From positions 124,001 through 188,000 of the IMG/VR virus record IMGVR_UViG_3300045971_000344: a stretch of 64,000 bases of DNA; one strand, 5' to 3'. A model generated the notes under the pieces. It was not told the origin of the DNA and did no database searches. It saw only the letters and a list, made by a program, of their open reading frames with translations. The position numbers were made by a program, and so were the translations under genes. Of the stretch, positions 55,413 through 63,358 are shown one piece after another (the stretch's first letter is position 1; each line of letters starts with the position of its first letter).

Positions 55413-55748
55413 CTAAGGTAAGAACAAGGTCTTTGTTGAGACCGTTGTAGTTGAATCAGTTAAGAGCGCATTTAGGTCTCTAAGTACAGGAATCTTTATG
55501 GTTGTCCCTCCAACTAAATCCATTGGACTCAAGAGTTTATTGTAGTCCAATACCACCCAGTACAGCTCAGAGGTACCAAAAAAGATTGCAGACACTTTAT
55601 CTGGCCTATACGCATTATAATTTGGAACAACATAAGTTGTAAACATCGGTAGTTTAGTCAATTTATCTATTAACTTATCGGATAGAGGGTCATTACCTTT
55701 ATTGTAGATCAAGTAAGTATTTCTATCATGAAGAGTTGACGTAATCAT
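55413..55748 (-). CDS. Baseplate gp53/LysM-like (tail X) protein
   Basis: YRPDKVS..FFG..ELYWVVL.YN.L..P.DL..G..IKIP. Confidence 0.85.
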   Translation of the reverse strand: MITSTLHDRNTYLIYNKGNDPLSDKLIDKLTKLPMFTTYVVPNYNAYRPDKVSAIFFGTSELYWVVLDYNKLLSPMDLVGGTTIKIPVLRDLNALLTDSTTTVSTKTLFLP

Positions 55749-56482
55749 TTTGGTTTACCTGCCTCAATATTTCTATCAGTAAGCTGAAACATCGGGTCAA
55801 CATCTTCAACTGTAACTGCATAGACCGAACGGACCGAGACGTCCACCTTTGCAGACAGGGGCTTTCCATTGGCGTCAAACATAGAGTCATAGGTCTTGCT
55901 CACGGACATTATAACACAACGCTCGAGCCGAAAGAAGTTTCCAAACTGTACTGTTACCGGGCTATTAATTTGTGCTGCCGTTTTAGGACTACCGGTCAAT
56001 CCATTTCCATTATCACCAAAAAACAAGGGTGGACTATAAGGCGCTGACATTCCGACACCAAAACCCATGGCTGTTGTTTCACTAGGTAAGGCCCATTTCA
56101 TTATGTTTCTAATAGGTTTTAGTAATTCAGAATTTACATCGCGTTCAACCTTAAAAACAAAAGGAATAGTTACATCCATTGGACTAGTACCTTGCCAAAT
56201 ATTAGCACTCAATGTTTTATTTTGAGGCCGATAACCCATGGCTGATCCAATGTTAGCTATTTTTTCACCTATACTTCCTGTCATGTCCTGAAACAGGTTA
56301 GCAAATTGAGGGCTCCAGTCAACTGAAAGATTTATATTCCAGTTGTCAGGCATAGGCGTACTTATTGCATTTTCCCATTCACCTTTATACATCCAAATTC
56401 TATAGTACGGGTTAGTTACCCCGTCATTGGTTGATGAAGGGTCTGATAACCATTCAGCTCTTCCGCTCCAGGTTAATGCCAT
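55745..56482 (-). CDS. Tail tube initiator/baseplate-tube junction protein (gp48/gp54-like)
   Basis: W.GTSP...IPF, P.TVQFG.FF....CVI.SVS..YD...G.PLSA.V.V tube-like fold; lies after the tape-measure-like gene. Confidence 0.7.
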   Translation of the reverse strand: MALTWSGRAEWLSDPSSTNDGVTNPYYRIWMYKGEWENAISTPMPDNWNINLSVDWSPQFANLFQDMTGSIGEKIANIGSAMGYRPQNKTLSANIWQGTSPMDVTIPFVFKVERDVNSELLKPIRNIMKWALPSETTAMGFGVGMSAPYSPPLFFGDNGNGLTGSPKTAAQINSPVTVQFGNFFRLERCVIMSVSKTYDSMFDANGKPLSAKVDVSVRSVYAVTVEDVDPMFQLTDRNIEAGKPK

Positions 56483-56484
56483 GA

Positions 56485-59196
56485 CTATACTACCCCCAAG
56501 ATTACTAAATTCAAGCCCGCATCATCCATCATGAAGATTCCATCCGTGGATAGCCTAGGCTGTTGTGCAACCTGAGAATTGCCTTCGCTACCTTTAGACT
56601 CAGCTTTTTCAGCAGGTACCGATCTCTGGTCCTGATAAACAGGGTCCAAGGGTGTTCTATTAACTATAGGTCCAGTATCGGCCACCCTCTTAGCGGAAGT
56701 AAAGGTATTTTTTATTGAATTAGATACGTTTCCTACTACTTCGCGTCCGCTATCCAATACGCTTCCACCAAAGGTCTTTGCGTTATCCAATAACGAGTTG
56801 AACACATTGGTCGGTCGTTGTATTCCAGGCAAGGAAGCAATTGGAGAGGCCTTACTTGAAGTACCTTGTTGACGTGCAACCATAGTATTAGCTTCAGGAA
56901 TAGCAGAGGTCTTTGTGGATCCTGCAGAAGAAACTGGTACGGCAGAAGCTAAATCTGGAGTAGTGACTGCCTGTTGTCCTAGGGTAGGAGTACTGGCCGT
57001 AGGTATCGACTCTTTATTATTTACAGTTAATCCTTGTGAAGCAACCACTGAGGTAGCTGTTTCTTTTTTATCTTCAGCTGTCTTGGTTGCAACAATAGGC
57101 GACGAAGATGCAGAAGAAGCTTGTGCGCTAGCCGCTTCACTCTTTTTTATTTCAGTCGCAGCAACATTTGCTCCAGAAGGAACTCCACTGGAAGTTTTTT
57201 CTTCGTCCTTGTTTAACTTAGCAAGCTCTGTCTGAGTTTTCTTTGGGTCTCCCCCGGAGCCTAACATCGCTGCAGCTACCTTTTTGCTATCTTCAGCTCC
57301 ACCTGCACCTCGTCCACCACCAACAAAGGTCTTTTGGTGATAAGGGTCATCAGCCGGATACACACCAGAAGGACGTTTAGTACTTCCGGTATGAAACATT
57401 TTTACTTTTCCATCCTTAGGATCCTTACCTAAGAATAAACCTACGTGAGTTATATACCTCCCAGTTCCTTTCTTTCCTTTTTTCCCGCCCGTTACATCTG
57501 GATCATGAAAAAACATAAGGTCGCCGGGCTGTAAAGATTTATAAGGGATATGCTTTCCACCACTTATCTTTTGGGTTTGGTCAAATTGCTGTTGCGCGGT
57601 ACCACTAACGCCTTTTATTCCTGCTTCTTGATAGACCTTAGTGGTCAATGAGCTACAATCAAGCGCACCTTTTTCTTTATCACCCTGATTTTGTGAGTAC
57701 GCGCGTCCGCTATACTTATCAATGGCCCCACCTCCTCCACTAAATCCAGAAGCAGGAGCACCAGATTGGAGCATAGTAGGACTAACATGCGCTTGTAACA
57801 TTGGTGGAGAACCACCACCTCCAGGTGTATCTGTTGCGCCCGGAGTGGTGGTACCAGAAGGAGTTTGTCCTGGCGCAGGTGCGGGTTGTTGACCTTTATC
57901 CCCAAACCCAAAGAATTTCTTTATGGATCCTGCTAAATTTGAGAACAGACGAGAGAACAACCCAGAAGGTGAGTATGCGGTCTCGGTTGTCTTGTTCAGT
58001 TTCTTTATATCTTCGGCTTGCCTTTCAGCTATAGACCTATCATCTTCAGCTGCTTCTCTTTGCTCTTTTTGCCAATCAATTTCGTTAGAAGACTTAACGT
58101 TATGACTAGGTAAAGCCAAAGGAGTGGTCGCCCCAACAGAGGCTTTTACGATTCCTTTGTTCTCAATAACAGGAACACTAGGTACACTGGCTTGTACCGT
58201 GCTTTTAGCAACCACAGGTATAGCTGGAACAGAAGTATTTGTTTCAATTTCTTTTACAGACCCTTTTTGTTCTACTAGTGTACTAACAGGGGGAGTAATG
58301 GTTGCTTGCTTTTTAGCTTCATTCTTTGCTCTTAATTCGGCAAGTTTCTTAGCGTTCGCTTCATCGCGTACCTTAGCTTCCTTAGCGGAAATTCCTCCAG
58401 AAAACATAGTGGAAGCATTGGCGGCAACTTCCATTGTATCGTCTATACCTTTACCTGCCCATTTAAGCGGGTTCCAATTAGACCTTGAATCAGTACCATT
58501 TTCTATGTCTTCTTTTGACTTTACTAGGCCGAGCCTTCGAGCTAAATCGTTTTGGTGAGACCTTCCTTCGGTAACAGCTTTGTATGTTCCGTGTAAGCCA
58601 TACCCTGCGGCAGCACCAGCACCCAGTGTTGCTGCTCCAAGTACTGCACCTCCTCCTGACAAACCACCCAGAGTAGAAAGCCCTGCATTAGCTAAACCTA
58701 GTCCTGCCCGACCATAACCTAATATGGATTTACCAAGCCCTCTAGCTCCTTTTGCTAGTTTACCCCCAAGTCCATGACCTATTGCTTCACCAGCGATTTC
58801 AGTACCAAGTCCACCACCGCCATTAAGACTAATCTTCTTAATGACCTTGATTAATTTATCGAGCTTTTCATTGGTGAAGCGTTGTTGCTTAATCATTTTA
58901 CTAAAGCCCGTATCCATTGTTTCTTGGGACTTGACTCGTGCTTCCTTTTCTCTTCCCTTTTCGGTCTTTGCTTCTTTATCTTTGTTTGCCTGAGTACGGC
59001 GTGCCCATTCAGCTTCTCCCAGCATCTTCGCCAAGTAACGGCGTGTATCGGACTTTCCATAAGCTGAAGGAAGGACCTTGGCTAAGCCATGACTTTTTTC
59101 AAGAATACTATCCTTAACATCGGACTTTACTTCCTTAAATTTCTTAAAAGCATGGCCCTTTACATCAGACAAAATGTTTGAGAACAGCTTATTCAT
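56485..59196 (-). CDS. Tape-measure-like/tail-associated protein with NlpC/P60 peptidoglycan hydrolase domain
   Basis: Helical and Gly/Ala-rich N-terminus; LDCSSL...GTAQQQF...LQPGDLMFF...ITHVGLF...FHTGS catalytic C-H-H. Confidence 0.8.
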   Translation of the reverse strand: MNKLFSNILSDVKGHAFKKFKEVKSDVKDSILEKSHGLAKVLPSAYGKSDTRRYLAKMLGEAEWARRTQANKDKEAKTEKGREKEARVKSQETMDTGFSKMIKQQRFTNEKLDKLIKVIKKISLNGGGGLGTEIAGEAIGHGLGGKLAKGARGLGKSILGYGRAGLGLANAGLSTLGGLSGGGAVLGAATLGAGAAAGYGLHGTYKAVTEGRSHQNDLARRLGLVKSKEDIENGTDSRSNWNPLKWAGKGIDDTMEVAANASTMFSGGISAKEAKVRDEANAKKLAELRAKNEAKKQATITPPVSTLVEQKGSVKEIETNTSVPAIPVVAKSTVQASVPSVPVIENKGIVKASVGATTPLALPSHNVKSSNEIDWQKEQREAAEDDRSIAERQAEDIKKLNKTTETAYSPSGLFSRLFSNLAGSIKKFFGFGDKGQQPAPAPGQTPSGTTTPGATDTPGGGGSPPMLQAHVSPTMLQSGAPASGFSGGGGAIDKYSGRAYSQNQGDKEKGALDCSSLTTKVYQEAGIKGVSGTAQQQFDQTQKISGGKHIPYKSLQPGDLMFFHDPDVTGGKKGKKGTGRYITHVGLFLGKDPKDGKVKMFHTGSTKRPSGVYPADDPYHQKTFVGGGRGAGGAEDSKKVAAAMLGSGGDPKKTQTELAKLNKDEEKTSSGVPSGANVAATEIKKSEAASAQASSASSSPIVATKTAEDKKETATSVVASQGLTVNNKESIPTASTPTLGQQAVTTPDLASAVPVSSAGSTKTSAIPEANTMVARQQGTSSKASPIASLPGIQRPTNVFNSLLDNAKTFGGSVLDSGREVVGNVSNSIKNTFTSAKRVADTGPIVNRTPLDPVYQDQRSVPAEKAESKGSEGNSQVAQQPRLSTDGIFMMDDAGLNLVILGVV

Positions 59197-59205
59197 GGCT
59201 CAACC

Positions 59206-59334
59206 TCACCGCATCAATCTATTACCGGAAGTGTCTTCTCTATACTTACTATGAAAATAGAGTATCTTCATAAGACTCATATTATCATCTGGGGGCATCC
59301 CACCCTTAATAGCCAAGTTCCATTGAATGTCCAT
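59206..59334 (-). CDS. Small tail chaperone partner ORF (42 aa), possibly made as a +1 frameshift extension of 59354..60250
   Basis: MDIQWNLAIKGGMPPDDNMSLMKILYFHSKYREDTSGNRLMR. The frame is open upstream through the TAG of the preceding gene, and there is no clear SD. Confidence 0.6.
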   Translation of the reverse strand: MDIQWNLAIKGGMPPDDNMSLMKILYFHSKYREDTSGNRLMR

Positions 59335-59353
59335 TAGCTGTTGTACGCTCAAG

Positions 59354-60250
59354 CTAGGGAAAGAAGGTTAGATAATCTACTCTTAACCTTCTTTTTGTTA
59401 CACCTCCGCACTCCTCGCATTGAACATCTAGCGATTCTGATACACCAAAATCTGGTATTTCATCAATTGCAGCCTCAAGTTTTTCCTGAAAAGCCAAATC
59501 ACTACTATCTTTTAAGATCTGCAATTTCTCTTGAGCGGTTAATCCCTGGTCTATCCATTGTGCAATATTCATCAAGTAAATATCACCCAAAATATCATCC
59601 CTAGATTGCTCATAATTGAGGTCATTCTCGTCCAACCCTTCAAGAGCTTTCTTTAAGGACCAAACTTCGTTAAAGATTCCCATGGTAGGAAAAGTCATCC
59701 CTTTTGGGACTTTGTAGTTTTGGTCTAGATAGACAACGTTCATATTTGAACGATTTATGACTGTAATATTTTCTTTCATACAACTACCCGAAGGTGTTTC
59801 AATGTCTTCATACTCAAGAGCATTATCACAAGTCCAAGTTACGCTAAAAGGCTTAGAAGGATAGCTATTCAGACGTAACCAATAAAGGATGAACTCGAAA
59901 TCCTCAATTATTAGTCGGGAAATAGGTTGACTAAGACACGCGTCTATAGCTGACACTAGGTACATTAAGTTTCCACTTACGCGAGCCATGTGGAGCAATC
60001 GAGCTTCATTTGGTGTAAATGGACGAACCCAGAGTTCCTTAAAGTCATAAAAACTATAGTTAGACGGAATATCAGACATTAAGACATAACGCCCGTCATT
60101 GGTAAAGTTCTTTACTTCAACTTGAGTGATAACAGGTTGTTGTAAGTGTACCTCTTCAGTTTTACTTTGTTCTTCTTGAGGGGCATCCACAAATCCGGAT
60201 ACTCTCTGTTTTGGGCGAAGCTGTGTCTTGGTGGGCTTTATTACATTCAT
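59354..60250 (-). CDS. Baseplate hub/tail assembly chaperone (T4 gp26-like)
   Basis: VRPFT..E..LL, DFEFILYWLRLNSY, WTC...C, CEECG...LTFFP. Confidence 0.75.
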   Translation of the reverse strand: MNVIKPTKTQLRPKQRVSGFVDAPQEEQSKTEEVHLQQPVITQVEVKNFTNDGRYVLMSDIPSNYSFYDFKELWVRPFTPNEARLLHMARVSGNLMYLVSAIDACLSQPISRLIIEDFEFILYWLRLNSYPSKPFSVTWTCDNALEYEDIETPSGSCMKENITVINRSNMNVVYLDQNYKVPKGMTFPTMGIFNEVWSLKKALEGLDENDLNYEQSRDDILGDIYLMNIAQWIDQGLTAQEKLQILKDSSDLAFQEKLEAAIDEIPDFGVSESLDVQCEECGGVTKRRLRVDYLTFFP

Positions 60251-60281: not shown

Positions 60282-60839
60282 TTACATCCACGTCCAATCA
60301 ACTTTATTTACAGAAAATGATACTTGTAATACCGTCCTACTTACTTCTCCACCACTCATAGTTAGATTCGTTACTTGTGTAGGAAATACTCCACTAAAAG
60401 TACCTTTACCATGAGGTTCATTTTGCTGGTCCAACAAGTGAACCTCAAAGGTGGTCTGATAGTCCGCGGCAGGACTATAAGCACCTATCAATTCTCCTTT
60501 AGTAATAACAATCAACTCTTGCCATGCCATAAATCCCTTTATGGCATTACAATACTGGTCTTCATAAAAGTTAGCATTGAAACTGTTAAAGGTTCCAAAG
60601 CCGGCATAATACCGGTTTGTTGCCATAATATGGCGACTCTCAACGTTAAATGTCTTAAAGGGGATATCAAGGGATTCAGTTCTATTTTGGAAGAAGTTTT
60701 CGGGGAATAGTGTACTTATATTGGTGAGTTTTGTTGTACCTACAGAACCTACTGACTGGATCACGTAGTTATGTGACATGAGTGGTTCTGGTAATCCAAG
60801 AACAGTATCTAAATTAGGTCTCAATGATGCCATACGCAT
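60282..60839 (-). CDS. Tail tube-fold protein (second copy)
   Basis: F.ANFYED...F..WQ...Y......LLDQ......FSGVFPT.V......V.FS. Confidence 0.75.
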   Translation of the reverse strand: MRMASLRPNLDTVLGLPEPLMSHNYVIQSVGSVGTTKLTNISTLFPENFFQNRTESLDIPFKTFNVESRHIMATNRYYAGFGTFNSFNANFYEDQYCNAIKGFMAWQELIVITKGELIGAYSPAADYQTTFEVHLLDQQNEPHGKGTFSGVFPTQVTNLTMSGGEVSRTVLQVSFSVNKVDWTWM

Positions 60840-60854
60840 GACCTCGGAAGTATT

Positions 60855-60888
60855 GTAGGCTGGTAGTACAAGTTACCTACCAGCCTAC
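60855..60888. promoter_or_regulatory. 12-bp perfect intergenic hairpin after the major tube gene
   Basis: GTAGGCTGGTAG (60855-60866) pairs with CTACCAGCCTAC (60877-60888); no U-tract on the minus strand. Confidence 0.6.
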
Positions 60889-60901
60889 TAACTAGTTACT
60901 A

Positions 60902-61453
60902 CTAAAACTGTGATGACCCAGTAGAGCTGTCTTGCTCATCTGCAAAGTCATATCTAAAGGTTGCACTTATCTCTGTAATGTTAGCACTGGAGCCGTCCAT
61001 GTTTACATCTTGTACTTCCGCACAGAACGTATTCCAAAGATAAATAGTCCCTGCAGGTGCACCTGTTTCATCATAAACAATGAACTGTCCCTTGGTAGCA
61101 TAATTTGCTCTACCTACGGACTTTTGTGTTCTAAAATCTCGTACAGCATTAACCCAGTTCTTAAGTGTTCTCTGAATATTCAGGGTTCTGGTCTCAATGA
61201 ACATAACGCTTAAGGTTCCTGGAAAGACCGTACGTCCAGCGGCATTGATCTTAAATCCGTGTATGGTCAAGTCCTGTGCTTCATTGGAAATCCCAGGGAT
61301 AGACGCGCTCTTACACTGTACGCGAAGTCCTTTTGAGTCCTTTGTTCCTGTTATTCCACTAGGGAGGGTTGGAAAATACAATTCAAAGTTATCCCCGTAA
61401 AGAGGGTCTTGAATATTTAGTACATCAAGTAGGTTTGTTCTTTCGATTGTCAT
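60902..61453 (-). CDS. Tail tube protein (T4 gp19-like)
   Basis: NFEL.FP, CKSASIPG, AGR..FPGTLSV.F.ET, W, EISATFRYD; directly after the sheath gene. Confidence 0.88.
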   Translation of the reverse strand: MTIERTNLLDVLNIQDPLYGDNFELYFPTLPSGITGTKDSKGLRVQCKSASIPGISNEAQDLTIHGFKINAAGRTVFPGTLSVMFIETRTLNIQRTLKNWVNAVRDFRTQKSVGRANYATKGQFIVYDETGAPAGTIYLWNTFCAEVQDVNMDGSSANITEISATFRYDFADEQDSSTGSSQF

Positions 61454-61465
61454 TTAATTCCTCCC

Positions 61466-63358
61466 TTATCCCAAAGTCGTTGCTGAGCCCAAAGAGACCC
61501 CAGCTTTATTTACAATCAGTTTTACGTTTATACGTTTTGCCGGGATCGTAGGCTCGAGATAAACATCTACATTCAGGTCACCCAGTGCAATATCATCATA
61601 AGTATTGTTTGCATTAGGCTCACCTGGGCCAGCGCAGACAACGTTGTAATTATACAGACCTCGTCCAAGTTTAATTGGTTCCAGAATATCGTTCAACCGC
61701 TGTACTATTTCTGCCCTCAGATAAGCATCATTCGGATCAAAGACGTTATACATTAACTGAGTATCAATGTTCCTGCTCAAGAACAGAATTAAGCGTACTA
61801 CGTTTACGTTAGACATAGCGCTTTCCATGCGCTGTAAAGTAGTTGCTCCCCAAAGAGCAGTACCAAGGTTTTCAAATACTCTGGTACAGTTGATTTGGTT
61901 GACTTCAAAGATGTCTCTGGAGTTTTGATGATAAATCATCTTTGTCCCAACAAAATTGGGGTCAATAGCATCCAGAAGGGCTCGTTTAAGACCCGCAGGT
62001 GCAAACCACGTTGCCCAGTTAGTGTCGGTAGCACAGTAAACTGCGGCGACATGACCTGATGGAGGAACAGTATTTACTTTACCTGTAAAGTTATCTACAA
62101 TATCAATCCATGGAGTGTAGATAGCTCCATAAGGAGTATCAACTGCGAGTCCACCATACTTGTTATCTCTATAGTCTACCGCATCCGTAGTAGGATCAAA
62201 ACGATTACCTTGCTTATCAAAAGGCATGTCCAGAATAACAAAGCAGTCTCCTCTCTTAATGGCGATATCCAGCATGCGCTTCTGTACTGAAGGGAAAGTA
62301 ATACCAGCATTAATCAGTAGGTCGAACTTAACTTCTTCACGCTCATAATACAGCTGAAGACCGCTGTTCTTAACAGGCGTAGGTGGATTAGCTATCTGTG
62401 AAGGGAATGCGTCTGTACCGTTGTAAATAATAGGCAGATCGGTCATACTAATAGGCGACCCATCTTCCATAGTTGTTCCACTTTCACCATTAGACAGATA
62501 AGCCAGGGATGCAGGATCTGTTCCTACAGGCGGTAAATACAGTAAGATATTATCTGAAGGAATCAATGAAGGGACAATTTTATCAGTATTTAGCGCGTTA
62601 TTAGCTACCCTGATATACTTGGACTTTCCGTTTATTACTGTCTCCAGAAATTGCTGACGACCATAGCCATCTACCTGCTGGTCACGACTTACTGTCCAAG
62701 TCTCTACAGGCCTAGAATTGGCCGCGCTATTTTTAGAGTAAACCAAAATCTGGAAAGTATTTGGATTAGACTTATCCGTGCTGTCTTTTATATTGGCAAC
62801 TGCTACCCGATAATTTCCATTATACTTATTAGGATCTGCCCCGTAAATATAAAAGAAGTCTGCGTATTTATCTGGGATCATTATAGGGTGTCCGCCTGCG
62901 TCAACCATAGGAACACCACCTGCATCAGTCTGCTGCTTCAAGGTATTGGTCAGACTAAAATCTGTATCGGCAGAGTCCAAGTAAAACATATTTGGATCAT
63001 ACGCGTCTACGTCTTTAGGTGTTGCCCATTGCTTGAATCCCATACCGCCCGAACCTTTGGTTACTGAGATCCCACCAAAACGTGCTCTGTGATGAACCCT
63101 GGTAATCAGGATCTCCTGCATATACAGTAAAGCGGTTAAGACAGTTTGATGCCCAAAACCTAGACTAGCGTCTGGAGTACCAAACAAAGACAGAAACTGA
63201 TTGGGACCATTTGTTATCTTAACAATTTGGTCAACAGGACCTTGATTAGATAACAATACGACCACGCCTTTACTTACTTGTTTTTGGTGTGAAGCAACCC
63301 GAGACCTATCTTCTACCTCGATGTATACTCCAGCTGATGCTTTAACAACTGATGCCAT
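61466..63358 (-). CDS. Contractile tail sheath protein (T4 gp18-like)
   Basis: AGVYIEVEDRS, GP, FG.P, RGDCFVILD, YTPW, VPPSGHVAA, WFAPAGLKR, WGATTL, NVVRL, FDPND, P..PAK.I. Confidence 0.95.
   Translation of the reverse strand: MASVVKASAGVYIEVEDRSRVASHQKQVSKGVVVLLSNQGPVDQIVKITNGPNQFLSLFGTPDASLGFGHQTVLTALLYMQEILITRVHHRARFGGISVTKGSGGMGFKQWATPKDVDAYDPNMFYLDSADTDFSLTNTLKQQTDAGGVPMVDAGGHPIMIPDKYADFFYIYGADPNKYNGNYRVAVANIKDSTDKSNPNTFQILVYSKNSAANSRPVETWTVSRDQQVDGYGRQQFLETVINGKSKYIRVANNALNTDKIVPSLIPSDNILLYLPPVGTDPASLAYLSNGESGTTMEDGSPISMTDLPIIYNGTDAFPSQIANPPTPVKNSGLQLYYEREEVKFDLLINAGITFPSVQKRMLDIAIKRGDCFVILDMPFDKQGNRFDPTTDAVDYRDNKYGGLAVDTPYGAIYTPWIDIVDNFTGKVNTVPPSGHVAAVYCATDTNWATWFAPAGLKRALLDAIDPNFVGTKMIYHQNSRDIFEVNQINCTRVFENLGTALWGATTLQRMESAMSNVNVVRLILFLSRNIDTQLMYNVFDPNDAYLRAEIVQRLNDILEPIKLGRGLYNYNVVCAGPGEPNANNTYDDIALGDLNVDVYLEPTIPAKRINVKLIVNKAGVSLGSATTLG

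Follow-up and report, generated by a model that had tools for sequence, protein, structure and literature searches.

The gp26-like tail-assembly gene of a giant phage ends in a slippery site, UUC UUU CCC followed by a stop codon, which is strictly conserved in all 12 independent lineages that we retrieved by protein similarity. Some ribosomes most likely slip one base forward here and add a 49-residue tail. One gene would then give a short and a long form of a probable chaperone, as phage lambda does with a backward slip and as PaBG-like phages, and probably T4 with gp26 and gp51, do with two separate genes. No fusion protein has been observed and the frameshift remains an inference, although a strong one, from sequence. 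The locus lies on the minus strand of the window, the 64,000-nucleotide stretch of DNA analysed here, and its features are collected in Table 1.

Table 1. Features of the tail module in the window, with their coordinates and the evidence for each.
Feature	Coordinates	Strand	Product and description	Basis
Tail sheath gene	61466..63358	-	630 aa; start of the sheath - tube - tube - gp26-like - tape measure module	phrog_23, E 2.8e-56
Two tail tube paralogs (60902-61453, 183 aa; 60282-60839, 185 aa)	60282..61453	-	Directly upstream of the gp26-like gene	phrog_45 'tail tube', E 1e-21 and 3e-11; PF23849 Phage_TTP_2 in relatives
gp26-like gene, 0-frame product (short form)	59354..60250	-	298 aa; N-terminal TAC-like domain (about residues 47-146), alpha/beta middle part, C-terminal CxxC...CxxC zinc-ribbon-like hairpin; ends ..VDYLTFFP + TAG	PF12322 T4_baseplate, E 4.2e-9, 36.9 bits against a cut-off of 24.5, profile positions 15-205 of 219; phrog_13792 and phrog_150 'baseplate hub'; fourteen relatives all end at FFP
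Proposed +1 shift site	59354..59365	-	TTC = 59365-59363, TTT = 59362-59360, CCC = 59359-57, TAG = 59356-54	Invariant in 12 of 12 lineages
+1-frame extension	59206..59355	-	49 codons (SLSV...RLMR) plus TGA (59208-59206); predicted to form two helices	Conserved peptide and +1-frame codon periodicity; alignment to in-frame homologs
Whole coding region of the predicted frameshift product (long form)	59206..60250	-	347 aa	Written with a four-letter step at the single in-frame CCCT (P298), as a device only and not as a claim about the genetic code
Tape-measure-like gene	56485..59196	-	903 aa; internal NlpC/P60 peptidase domain; own strong SD (GGTGAGG); ATG at 59196, 9 nt after the stop of the extension	Same position in relatives annotated as tape measure, VgrG-like or endolysin
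PmgG-like (T4 gp48-like) tube initiator / baseplate-tube junction protein	55745..56482	-	Downstream of the tape-measure gene	phrog_1114, E 3.2e-30; PaBG pmgG at the same position; P1 PmgG resembles T4 gp48 (PMC9024508)

The first-pass annotation had proposed a +1 shift at this site, and the junction peptide that it gave is correct. Skipping the T at 59356 and reading from 59355 gives SLSVQQLMDIQWNL... for the length of the extension. The +1 frame opens only 4 codons before the TAG, after a TAA, so that any shift must happen inside CCT TCT TTC CCT AG. A 49-codon open frame is by itself weak evidence, since we estimate its probability by chance at about 0.04 at 39% GC, and it is conservation that lifts the observation far above chance. 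The 12 lineages have 39–55% protein identity, and in every one of them TTC TTT CCC is followed by TAG (9 lineages) or TAA (3 lineages) and by a homologous extension in the +1 phase, whilst the neighbouring D, Y, L and T/S codons vary synonymously. Among 68 invariant, codon-degenerate amino-acid columns in the 11 lineages tested, the only three frozen to a single codon are these three, although CCC accounts for 13% of Pro codons and TTC for 26% of Phe codons in this genome. The Phe-Phe motif is conserved as protein across the wider family and part of the conservation is therefore at the protein level, but this does not explain the frozen third positions. A scan of metagenomes only re-found one locus (L009), and megablast against annotated phages found nothing.

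The +1 frame is coding from its first codon. The entropy by codon position is 0.39/0.31/0.87, and Leu and Gln codons change synonymously. The extension has no conserved start: its codon 2 is TTG in 6 lineages, TTA in 4, CTG in 1 and GTA in 1, and the ATG at codon 8 is replaced by CTA in one lineage (L012) and by CTC in another (L027). The absence of a clear SD, noted in the first-pass annotation, is confirmed quantitatively, with an SD duplex energy of +0.4 to +2.0 kcal/mol (−3.1 in the window) compared with a median of −7.9 at 38 called starts and −2.7 for background. Public gene callers left the interval uncalled in all but one locus. Seven PaBG-like loci encode the core and the extension as one ORF and align to the modelled fusion without a gap at the junction, showing that the two parts belong to one polypeptide. 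In the model of one such natural long form (L029) the extension forms helices 273–288 and 298–327, the first of which starts 5 residues before the position of the window's Met at codon 8; this position is Leu or Phe in the single-ORF homologs.

The explanation that best fits these data is that the gene is decoded in two ways. Most ribosomes would terminate at UAG and release the short form ending Phe-Phe-Pro, whilst a fraction would shift +1 on UUU_CCC_UAG. With peptidyl-tRNA-Pro on CCC in the P site and a slowly decoded stop in the A site, the tRNA re-pairs with CCU, the next codon read is AGC, and the two-helix extension is added. The stimulator is most likely the nascent Phe-Phe-Pro end and its codons, as in E. 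coli pheL, rather than a 3′ RNA structure or an upstream SD. No conserved 3′ structure was found (the alignment consensus is −1.3 kcal/mol and the window's fold has z = +1.5 against shuffles), and the 20 nt before +1 codon 2 show no anti-SD pairing (+0.7 to +2.0 kcal/mol in all 11 loci). There is no sign of a phage-encoded helper tRNA; the genome holds only tRNA-Leu(taa), Met and Gln plus a tmRNA, with no tRNA-Pro and no suppressor. Nor is there any sign of stop-codon reassignment; TAA, TGA and TAG all end long ORFs. Readthrough and a −1 shift were also considered and rejected, since by our reading the 0 frame runs only 15 non-conserved codons past the TAG and the −1 frame closes within 10 codons.

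The label of tail assembly chaperone (TAC) used in the first-pass annotation gains support from the position of the gene between the tube and tape-measure genes, an order that is the same in all relatives with enough flank, and from the predicted structure of its N-terminal domain. The four best of 48,161 structural matches for residues 47–146 are 3FGX (Z 5.9, 85 aa), 2OB9 (Z 5.2, 76 aa), 3KLU (Z 5.0, 79 aa) and 5IR0 (Z 4.2, 77 aa), all of them TACs (PMC9603447, PMC12987554), and the next match falls to Z 3.3. The Z values are low, below the stated noise level for single hits, and although the top Foldseek hit is also 2OB9 its E of 1.4 is not significant, and the evidence for the TAC fold is inconclusive. 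Sequence-profile searches found no link from the N-terminal domain to solved TACs or to Pfam TAC families. A Foldseek search of the whole long form against the PDB found nothing, and the extension alone resembles generic helix-loop-helix pairs, which is uninformative. We infer that the two forms may act like lambda gpG and gpGT, with a common TAC-fold part handling the tape measure or hub and the extension acting as an adaptor present on only a subset of molecules.

The alternative that survives best, although we consider it unlikely, is that the extension is translated on its own as a peptide of about 42–48 aa, by termination-reinitiation at the TTG 2 nt after the stop or at the ATG 22 nt downstream. 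In phiRSL1 (ORF206) and BcepSauron (BcepSauron_257) a separate 50-aa ORF is annotated with an AAGGA-type SD and an ATG start, and these starts align with the window's Met at +1 codon 8. Ten of the 12 lineages keep that ATG, and post-termination ribosomes may be able to reinitiate nearby without an SD, so that some reinitiation giving a free 42-aa peptide cannot be excluded. However, the peptide stays conserved from codon 1, with synonymous changes, even where the ATG is absent or codon 2 is TTA, CTG or GTA; there is no SD; and reinitiation does not explain why TTC TTT CCC is frozen at third positions against codon bias. In the single-ORF homologs, moreover, the residues before the Met position belong to the first helix.

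[quoted passage not shown] The high-level CCC_UGA shifting of pheL was concluded to be incidental, with a warning about over-interpretation (PMC3082878), and the conservation of the FF motif as protein in the wider family also speaks for this reading. Unlike pheL, where the +1 peptide is not conserved in sequence or length, the +1 peptide here is conserved across 12 lineages with coding periodicity and is homologous to the in-frame tail of PaBG-like proteins (47–76 bits with an HMM of the extension). An artefact or decay of a single ORF like PaBG_00072 by a one-base error or insertion in the T3C3 run, which would fuse the frames if removed and might arise from a homopolymer error, or restoration of the frame by RNA polymerase slippage, is very unlikely, since the arrangement recurs in 12 independently assembled lineages from different samples with saturated synonymous divergence elsewhere in the gene, independently built contigs from two pond-metagenome runs (possibly the source sample) are identical at about 25x depth with no indel, and runs of three bases are probably far too short for transcriptional slippage.

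Programmed frameshifting in the chaperone gene before the tape-measure gene is one of the most conserved recoding events in phages, whilst T4 gp26 and gp51 have been essential hub-assembly factors of unclear function for fifty years. The locus offers a model of gp26/gp51 as the G and GT equivalents, and adds a clean natural example of a pheL-type Phe-CCC-stop +1 site that appears to be used for gene expression. In the literature that we could search, which did not include subscription-only papers, we found no paper that links gp26/gp51 to G/GT or reports this frameshift, and jumbo-phage annotations call these genes 'hypothetical' or 'baseplate hub'. A broader reading, which is possible but which we put forward only tentatively, is that the PF12322 proteins are the long-sought counterparts of lambda G/GT in T4-type and jumbo myoviruses, TAC-fold chaperones needed in a short and a C-terminally extended form. 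This requirement would be so basic that evolution has met it in three interchangeable ways within one family: a +1 frameshift at UUU_CCC_stop in this clade, duplication into a short and a long paralog (PaBG, Lu11, and T4 as gp26 and gp51), and a split-off extension gene (phiRSL1, BcepSauron). It would remove the standing of T4 as the exception to the conserved tail-chaperone frameshift and give the so-called catalytic role of gp51 a concrete model.

The proposal in the first-pass annotation that a +1 shift in a T4-like gp26/gp51 arrangement would link the two chaperone systems is partly borne out, although the window has one gp26-like gene and not a pair. T4 gp26 and gp51 belong to the same Pfam family as the window protein, scoring 215.6 and 177.5 bits, respectively. 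T4 has a short member (gp26, 208 aa, ending just after a CxxC hairpin and ..EFFELL) and a long member (gp51, 249 aa) with about 48 residues beyond the family profile; both are listed as hub assembly chaperones and gp51 is stated to be absent from the particle (PMC3004832). T4, however, uses two genes on opposite strands with no frameshift. Comparison of the clade alignment with the single T4 gp26 and gp51 sequences by hhalign is insignificant (E 0.016 and 0.054, with low probability), so that membership rests on the Pfam and PHROG profiles. The extension HMM does not detect the tail of gp51, and the equivalence of the tails is an analogy of size and position only. Relatives with both forms are PaBG_00073/00072, Lu11_0058/0057 and their HRDY3 and NCTB counterparts, homologs with 20–30% identity in the same sheath - tube - tube - X - tape measure module. 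Their long paralog carries the same extension, but the two forms are encoded by adjacent paralogous genes, the extension is in frame 0 and no frameshift is needed; all are annotated only as hypothetical proteins.

With the lambda gpG/gpGT system and the conserved frameshift of long-tailed phages (Levin 1993; Xu, Hendrix and Duda 2004, 2013, 2014, as summarised in PMC5009743) the locus shares the position of the gene immediately before the tape-measure gene and after the tube gene, and two products, here predicted, with a common N-terminal part, the longer made by a frameshift near the 3′ end. It differs in direction, being +1 at a shifty stop and not −1 on an XXXYYYZ heptamer, although +1 has been proposed for this gene position in at least one other virus, HSTV-2 (PMC5009743). 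The protein is also much larger, with an extra alpha/beta part and a zinc ribbon, the extension is only 49 aa, and the family is PF12322 rather than a classical TAC family. The site itself matches that of E. coli pheL, where UUC_CCC_UGA and UUU_CCC_UGA give 15% +1 shifting, the penultimate Phe is crucial, three 5′ codons suffice and the 3′ sequence is irrelevant (PMC3082878). The last residues are ..T-F-P there and ..T-F-F-P here, but the stop here is UAG or UAA and never UGA. The same combination of CCC in the P site and a stop in the A site is used to make C-terminally extended products of tail-module genes in Listeria phages PSA, A118 and A500 (tsh, CCC_UGA) and in Bacillus phage SPP1 and Lactobacillus phage Q54 (CCC_UAA) (PMC3082878, PMC5009743). 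The SPP1 and Listeria cases appear to extend structural proteins (major tail or capsid protein) with decoration domains, whereas the gene here is an assembly-chaperone-type gene of a different family in jumbo myoviruses, and the preceding codons are Phe-Phe rather than AAA as in tsh. In prfB (RF2) the P-site tRNA likewise slips +1 next to a stop codon in the A site, but that shift probably depends on an SD-like element 3 nt upstream, of which there is no counterpart here, and there is no sign of autoregulation by a release factor.

The virus record to which the window belongs is 294,944 bp long (IMG/VR, 39% GC, judged complete) and represents a jumbo myovirus from a pond metagenome. Its tail module runs on the minus strand, with a gp26-like gene lying between two tube paralogs and a tape-measure-like gene, from which it is separated by a 147-nt interval. 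The gp26-like protein (298 aa) passes the curated threshold of Pfam PF12322, 'T4_baseplate' (36.9 bits against 24.5). The first-pass annotation had reported that this gene ends TTC TTT CCC TAG and that the +1 frame continues for 49 more residues, ending just before the tape-measure-like gene, and this observation holds. The 49 codons (SLSVQQLMDIQWNL...) are followed by a TGA that lies 9 nt before the tape-measure ATG, which has a strong SD. The +1 frame opens only four codons before the TAG, so any shift must occur within those few codons. The tape-measure-like proteins carry different internal cell-wall-degrading domains in different lineages, NlpC/P60 in the window and in the contigs P0012 and L012, and SLT (PF01464) in the relative L011, suggesting swapping of the lytic domain inside an otherwise syntenic gene.

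Coordinates of the features discussed in the window, elsewhere in its genome and in the loci of relatives (L numbers)
Feature	Sequence	Coordinates	Strand
Tail sheath gene	window	61466-63358	-
Tube paralogs	window	60902-61453 and 60282-60839	-
gp26-like gene	window	59354-60250	-
Basic patch after the second CxxC (also at the same place in L005-L014)	window	59378-59395	-
Proposed shift site, TTC TTT CCC TAG	window	59365-59354	-
Stop codon at the shift site	window	59354-59356	-
Start of the +1 reading	window	59355	-
Tape-measure-like gene, 903 aa, NlpC/P60 domain	window	56485-59196	-
PmgG/gp48-like tube initiator	window	55745-56482	-
tmRNA	own genome, outside the window	C1:85845-86257	
tRNA-Leu(taa), tRNA-Met(cat) and tRNA-Gln(ttg)	own genome	54186-54272, 83570-83643, 83815-83889	
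Tape-measure-like proteins compared with that of the window for their lytic domains	relatives	L011:3051-4906; L005:4130-6952	
66-aa ORF called in the interval	relative	L010:2797-2997	
Adjacent short and long gp26-like genes, PaBG_00073/00072	PaBG	L001:4195-5924	
Adjacent short and long gp26-like genes, Lu11_0058/0057	Lu11	L015:2986-4749	
Adjacent short and long gp26-like genes	HRDY3	L016:2177-3930	
Adjacent short and long gp26-like genes	NCTB	L019:2192-3906	
CCC and +1 extension region	BcepSauron	L003:5905-5960	
CCC and +1 extension region	Motura	L017:3690-3720	
CCC and +1 extension region	BCSR5	L018:3770-3840	
CCC and +1 extension region	phiRSL1	L002:5720-5760	
CCC and +1 extension region	distant relative	L041:3140-3210	
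CCC and +1 extension region	distant relative	L043:3189-3240	

Retrieval of relatives by protein similarity, which does not select for the motif, gave 14 relatives, all ending ..YL[T/S]FFP. DNA was obtained for ten of them plus the locus L027, making 12 independent lineages at 39-55% identity counting the window. All 12 have TTC TTT CCC followed by TAG (9 lineages) or TAA (3), and all have a homologous +1 extension of 43-55 codons ending 3-30 nt before the tape-measure start. The D, Y, L and T/S codons just upstream vary synonymously, whilst across 68 invariant, codon-degenerate columns in 11 genes exactly three use a single codon in every sequence, and they are these last three. This is against codon bias, since CCC is 13% of Pro codons and TTC 26% of Phe codons in this genome. 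The TAG at 9 of 12 contrasts with 19% TAG among the genome's long ORFs, although the lineages are related and we therefore attach no probability to it. TGA, which ends 27% of the genome's long ORFs, is never found at this position; it would make the first +1 codon GAY (Asp), the residue found there in the single-ORF homologs, and its absence may therefore reflect release-factor choice rather than protein constraint. The basic patch after the second CxxC (KRR or RRR) uses the Arg codons AGA AGG next to each other in every lineage, 27-30 nt upstream of CCC. The codon choice is striking, but the distance is not fixed and we did not count it as a stimulator.

The +1 frame is very probably translated, and not from a start of its own. 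Substitution entropy downstream follows the +1 codon phase from the first codon (0.39/0.31/0.87). The second +1 codon is TTG, TTA, CTG or GTA, and the ATG at codon 8 is CTA in the relative L012 and CTC in L027, yet the peptide is conserved through these positions. Anti-SD pairing before either candidate start is +0.4 to +2.0 kcal/mol (-3.1 in the window), compared with a median of -7.9 at 38 called gene starts in the same loci and -2.7 at random positions. Public gene calls leave the interval empty except for one in the relative L010, a 66-aa ORF that overlaps the end of the gp26-like gene by 56 nt because the +1 frame is open 22 codons upstream there; it is probably a mis-call of the frameshift extension.

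In PaBG and six other PaBG-like loci the homolog is a single ORF whose C-terminal ~58 residues match the extension (HMM 47-76 bits, frame 0). The modelled +1 product, written with a four-letter step at the only in-frame CCCT as a notational device and not as a genetic-code claim, aligns to these without a gap at the junction: ..LTFFP-SLSVQQLMDIQW.. against ..MTFFA-DNSEKDILDIQY... A confident model of a natural long form (pLDDT 85, pTM 0.77) shows the extension as two helices, the first of which begins five residues before the position of the window's Met. This position is Leu or Phe in the single-ORF proteins, and the ATG is therefore best read as a hydrophobic helix position, not a start.

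The site has the E, P and A-site arrangement of E. coli pheL, where UUC_CCC_UGA (or UUU_CCC_UGA) gives 15% +1 shifting against no more than 2% for CCC_UGA in general; the penultimate Phe is crucial, three 5' codons suffice and the 3' sequence is irrelevant (PMC3082878). The efficiency here cannot be estimated from sequence, because the stop is UAG or UAA and the host is unknown. CCC_UAA and CCC_UGA +1 shifts are used in tail genes of SPP1, Q54 and Listeria phages. Consistent with a 5' peptide-type stimulator, we found no conserved 3' structure and no upstream SD-like element. The phage encodes no tRNA-Pro or suppressor tRNA; ARAGORN finds only a tmRNA (tag peptide ADNYGFEARLAA) and the tRNAs for Leu, Met and Gln. 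The pheL paper reports that a C-terminal Pro-stop end is also a tmRNA-tagging site, so a phage tmRNA could matter for ribosomes stalled at CCC-UAG, but that connection is pure speculation.

We thus conclude, from sequence evidence and without expression or protein data, that this is a real, conserved and very probably utilised +1 programmed frameshift. Of the alternatives, reinitiation giving a free peptide remains possible as a minor route, though unlikely. Incidental shifting, as argued for pheL, is contradicted by the conserved +1 peptide. Error or decay is excluded by the 12 assemblies and by identical contigs at about 25x depth, and runs of three bases would appear too short for transcriptional slippage.

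In the distant relatives at 20-30% identity (BcepSauron, Motura, BCSR5, phiRSL1 and the loci L041 and L043) the extension ORF is again always in the +1 phase and the +1 frame is open across the end of the upstream gene. A CCC lies 1-3 codons before the stop (Sauron TTC TTT CCC TCT TAA; Motura CTT CCC AGT TAA; L041 TTT TTT CCC TTC AAT TTC TGA; L043 TTT TTT CCC CTT GAT TTC TGA). In phiRSL1 and BcepSauron the extension is a separate 50-aa ORF with its own SD and ATG, whereas Motura, BCSR5 and L043 have no canonical start where these two start, and the extension HMM matches upstream of the annotated ATG of BCSR5. Shifting by +1 at CCC followed by a sense codon may be older and wider in the family, and several GenBank start annotations look doubtful.

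The structural comparison bears on what the gene encodes. For the N-terminal domain of the window protein (residues 47-146, pLDDT 84), the four best of 48,161 representative chains were 3FGX (Z 5.9, 85 aligned residues), 2OB9 (Z 5.2, 76), 3KLU (Z 5.0, 79) and 5IR0 (Z 4.2, 77), with the next hit at Z 3.3. The first three are identified in the literature as phage tail assembly chaperones and 5IR0 as the TAC of V. cholerae PLE1 (PMC9603447, PMC12987554). Foldseek independently ranks 2OB9 first, without significance. The Z values are low, as they are among TACs themselves (Z of about 4.5 in PMC9603447), and no sequence profile links the families; we therefore regard the TAC fold as likely, not shown.

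PaBG, Lu11, HRDY3 and NCTB carry two adjacent genes before the tape measure, a short one (~260 aa) and a long one (313-324 aa) with the extension. In PaBG and Lu11 the two are demonstrable paralogs (BLASTP 6e-27 and 1e-16), and the short one ends at the zinc-ribbon/SFF motif. All are annotated 'hypothetical protein' and could be re-annotated as a gp26/gp51-like chaperone pair. T4 gp26 (208 aa) and gp51 (249 aa) both match PF12322 (8.8e-64 and 3.9e-52), and gp51 extends about 48 residues past the profile. Both are listed as hub assembly chaperones, and gp51 is stated to be absent from the particle (PMC3004832). The extension HMM does not detect the tail of gp51, so that part of the parallel is one of size and position only. 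The G/GT-like functional reading and the link to T4 gp26/gp51 are plausible, although either is about as likely as not. Both the tail-chaperone frameshift and the CCC-stop +1 site are already known, but we found no open-access paper that reports this frameshift or links gp26/gp51 to G/GT; the stop is UAG or UAA where pheL has UGA. One family thus seems to supply a short and an extended form by frameshift, by duplication or by splitting, and this resembles the lambda G/GT logic, which the recoding review (PMC5009743) describes as conserved in long-tailed phages 'except T4'.
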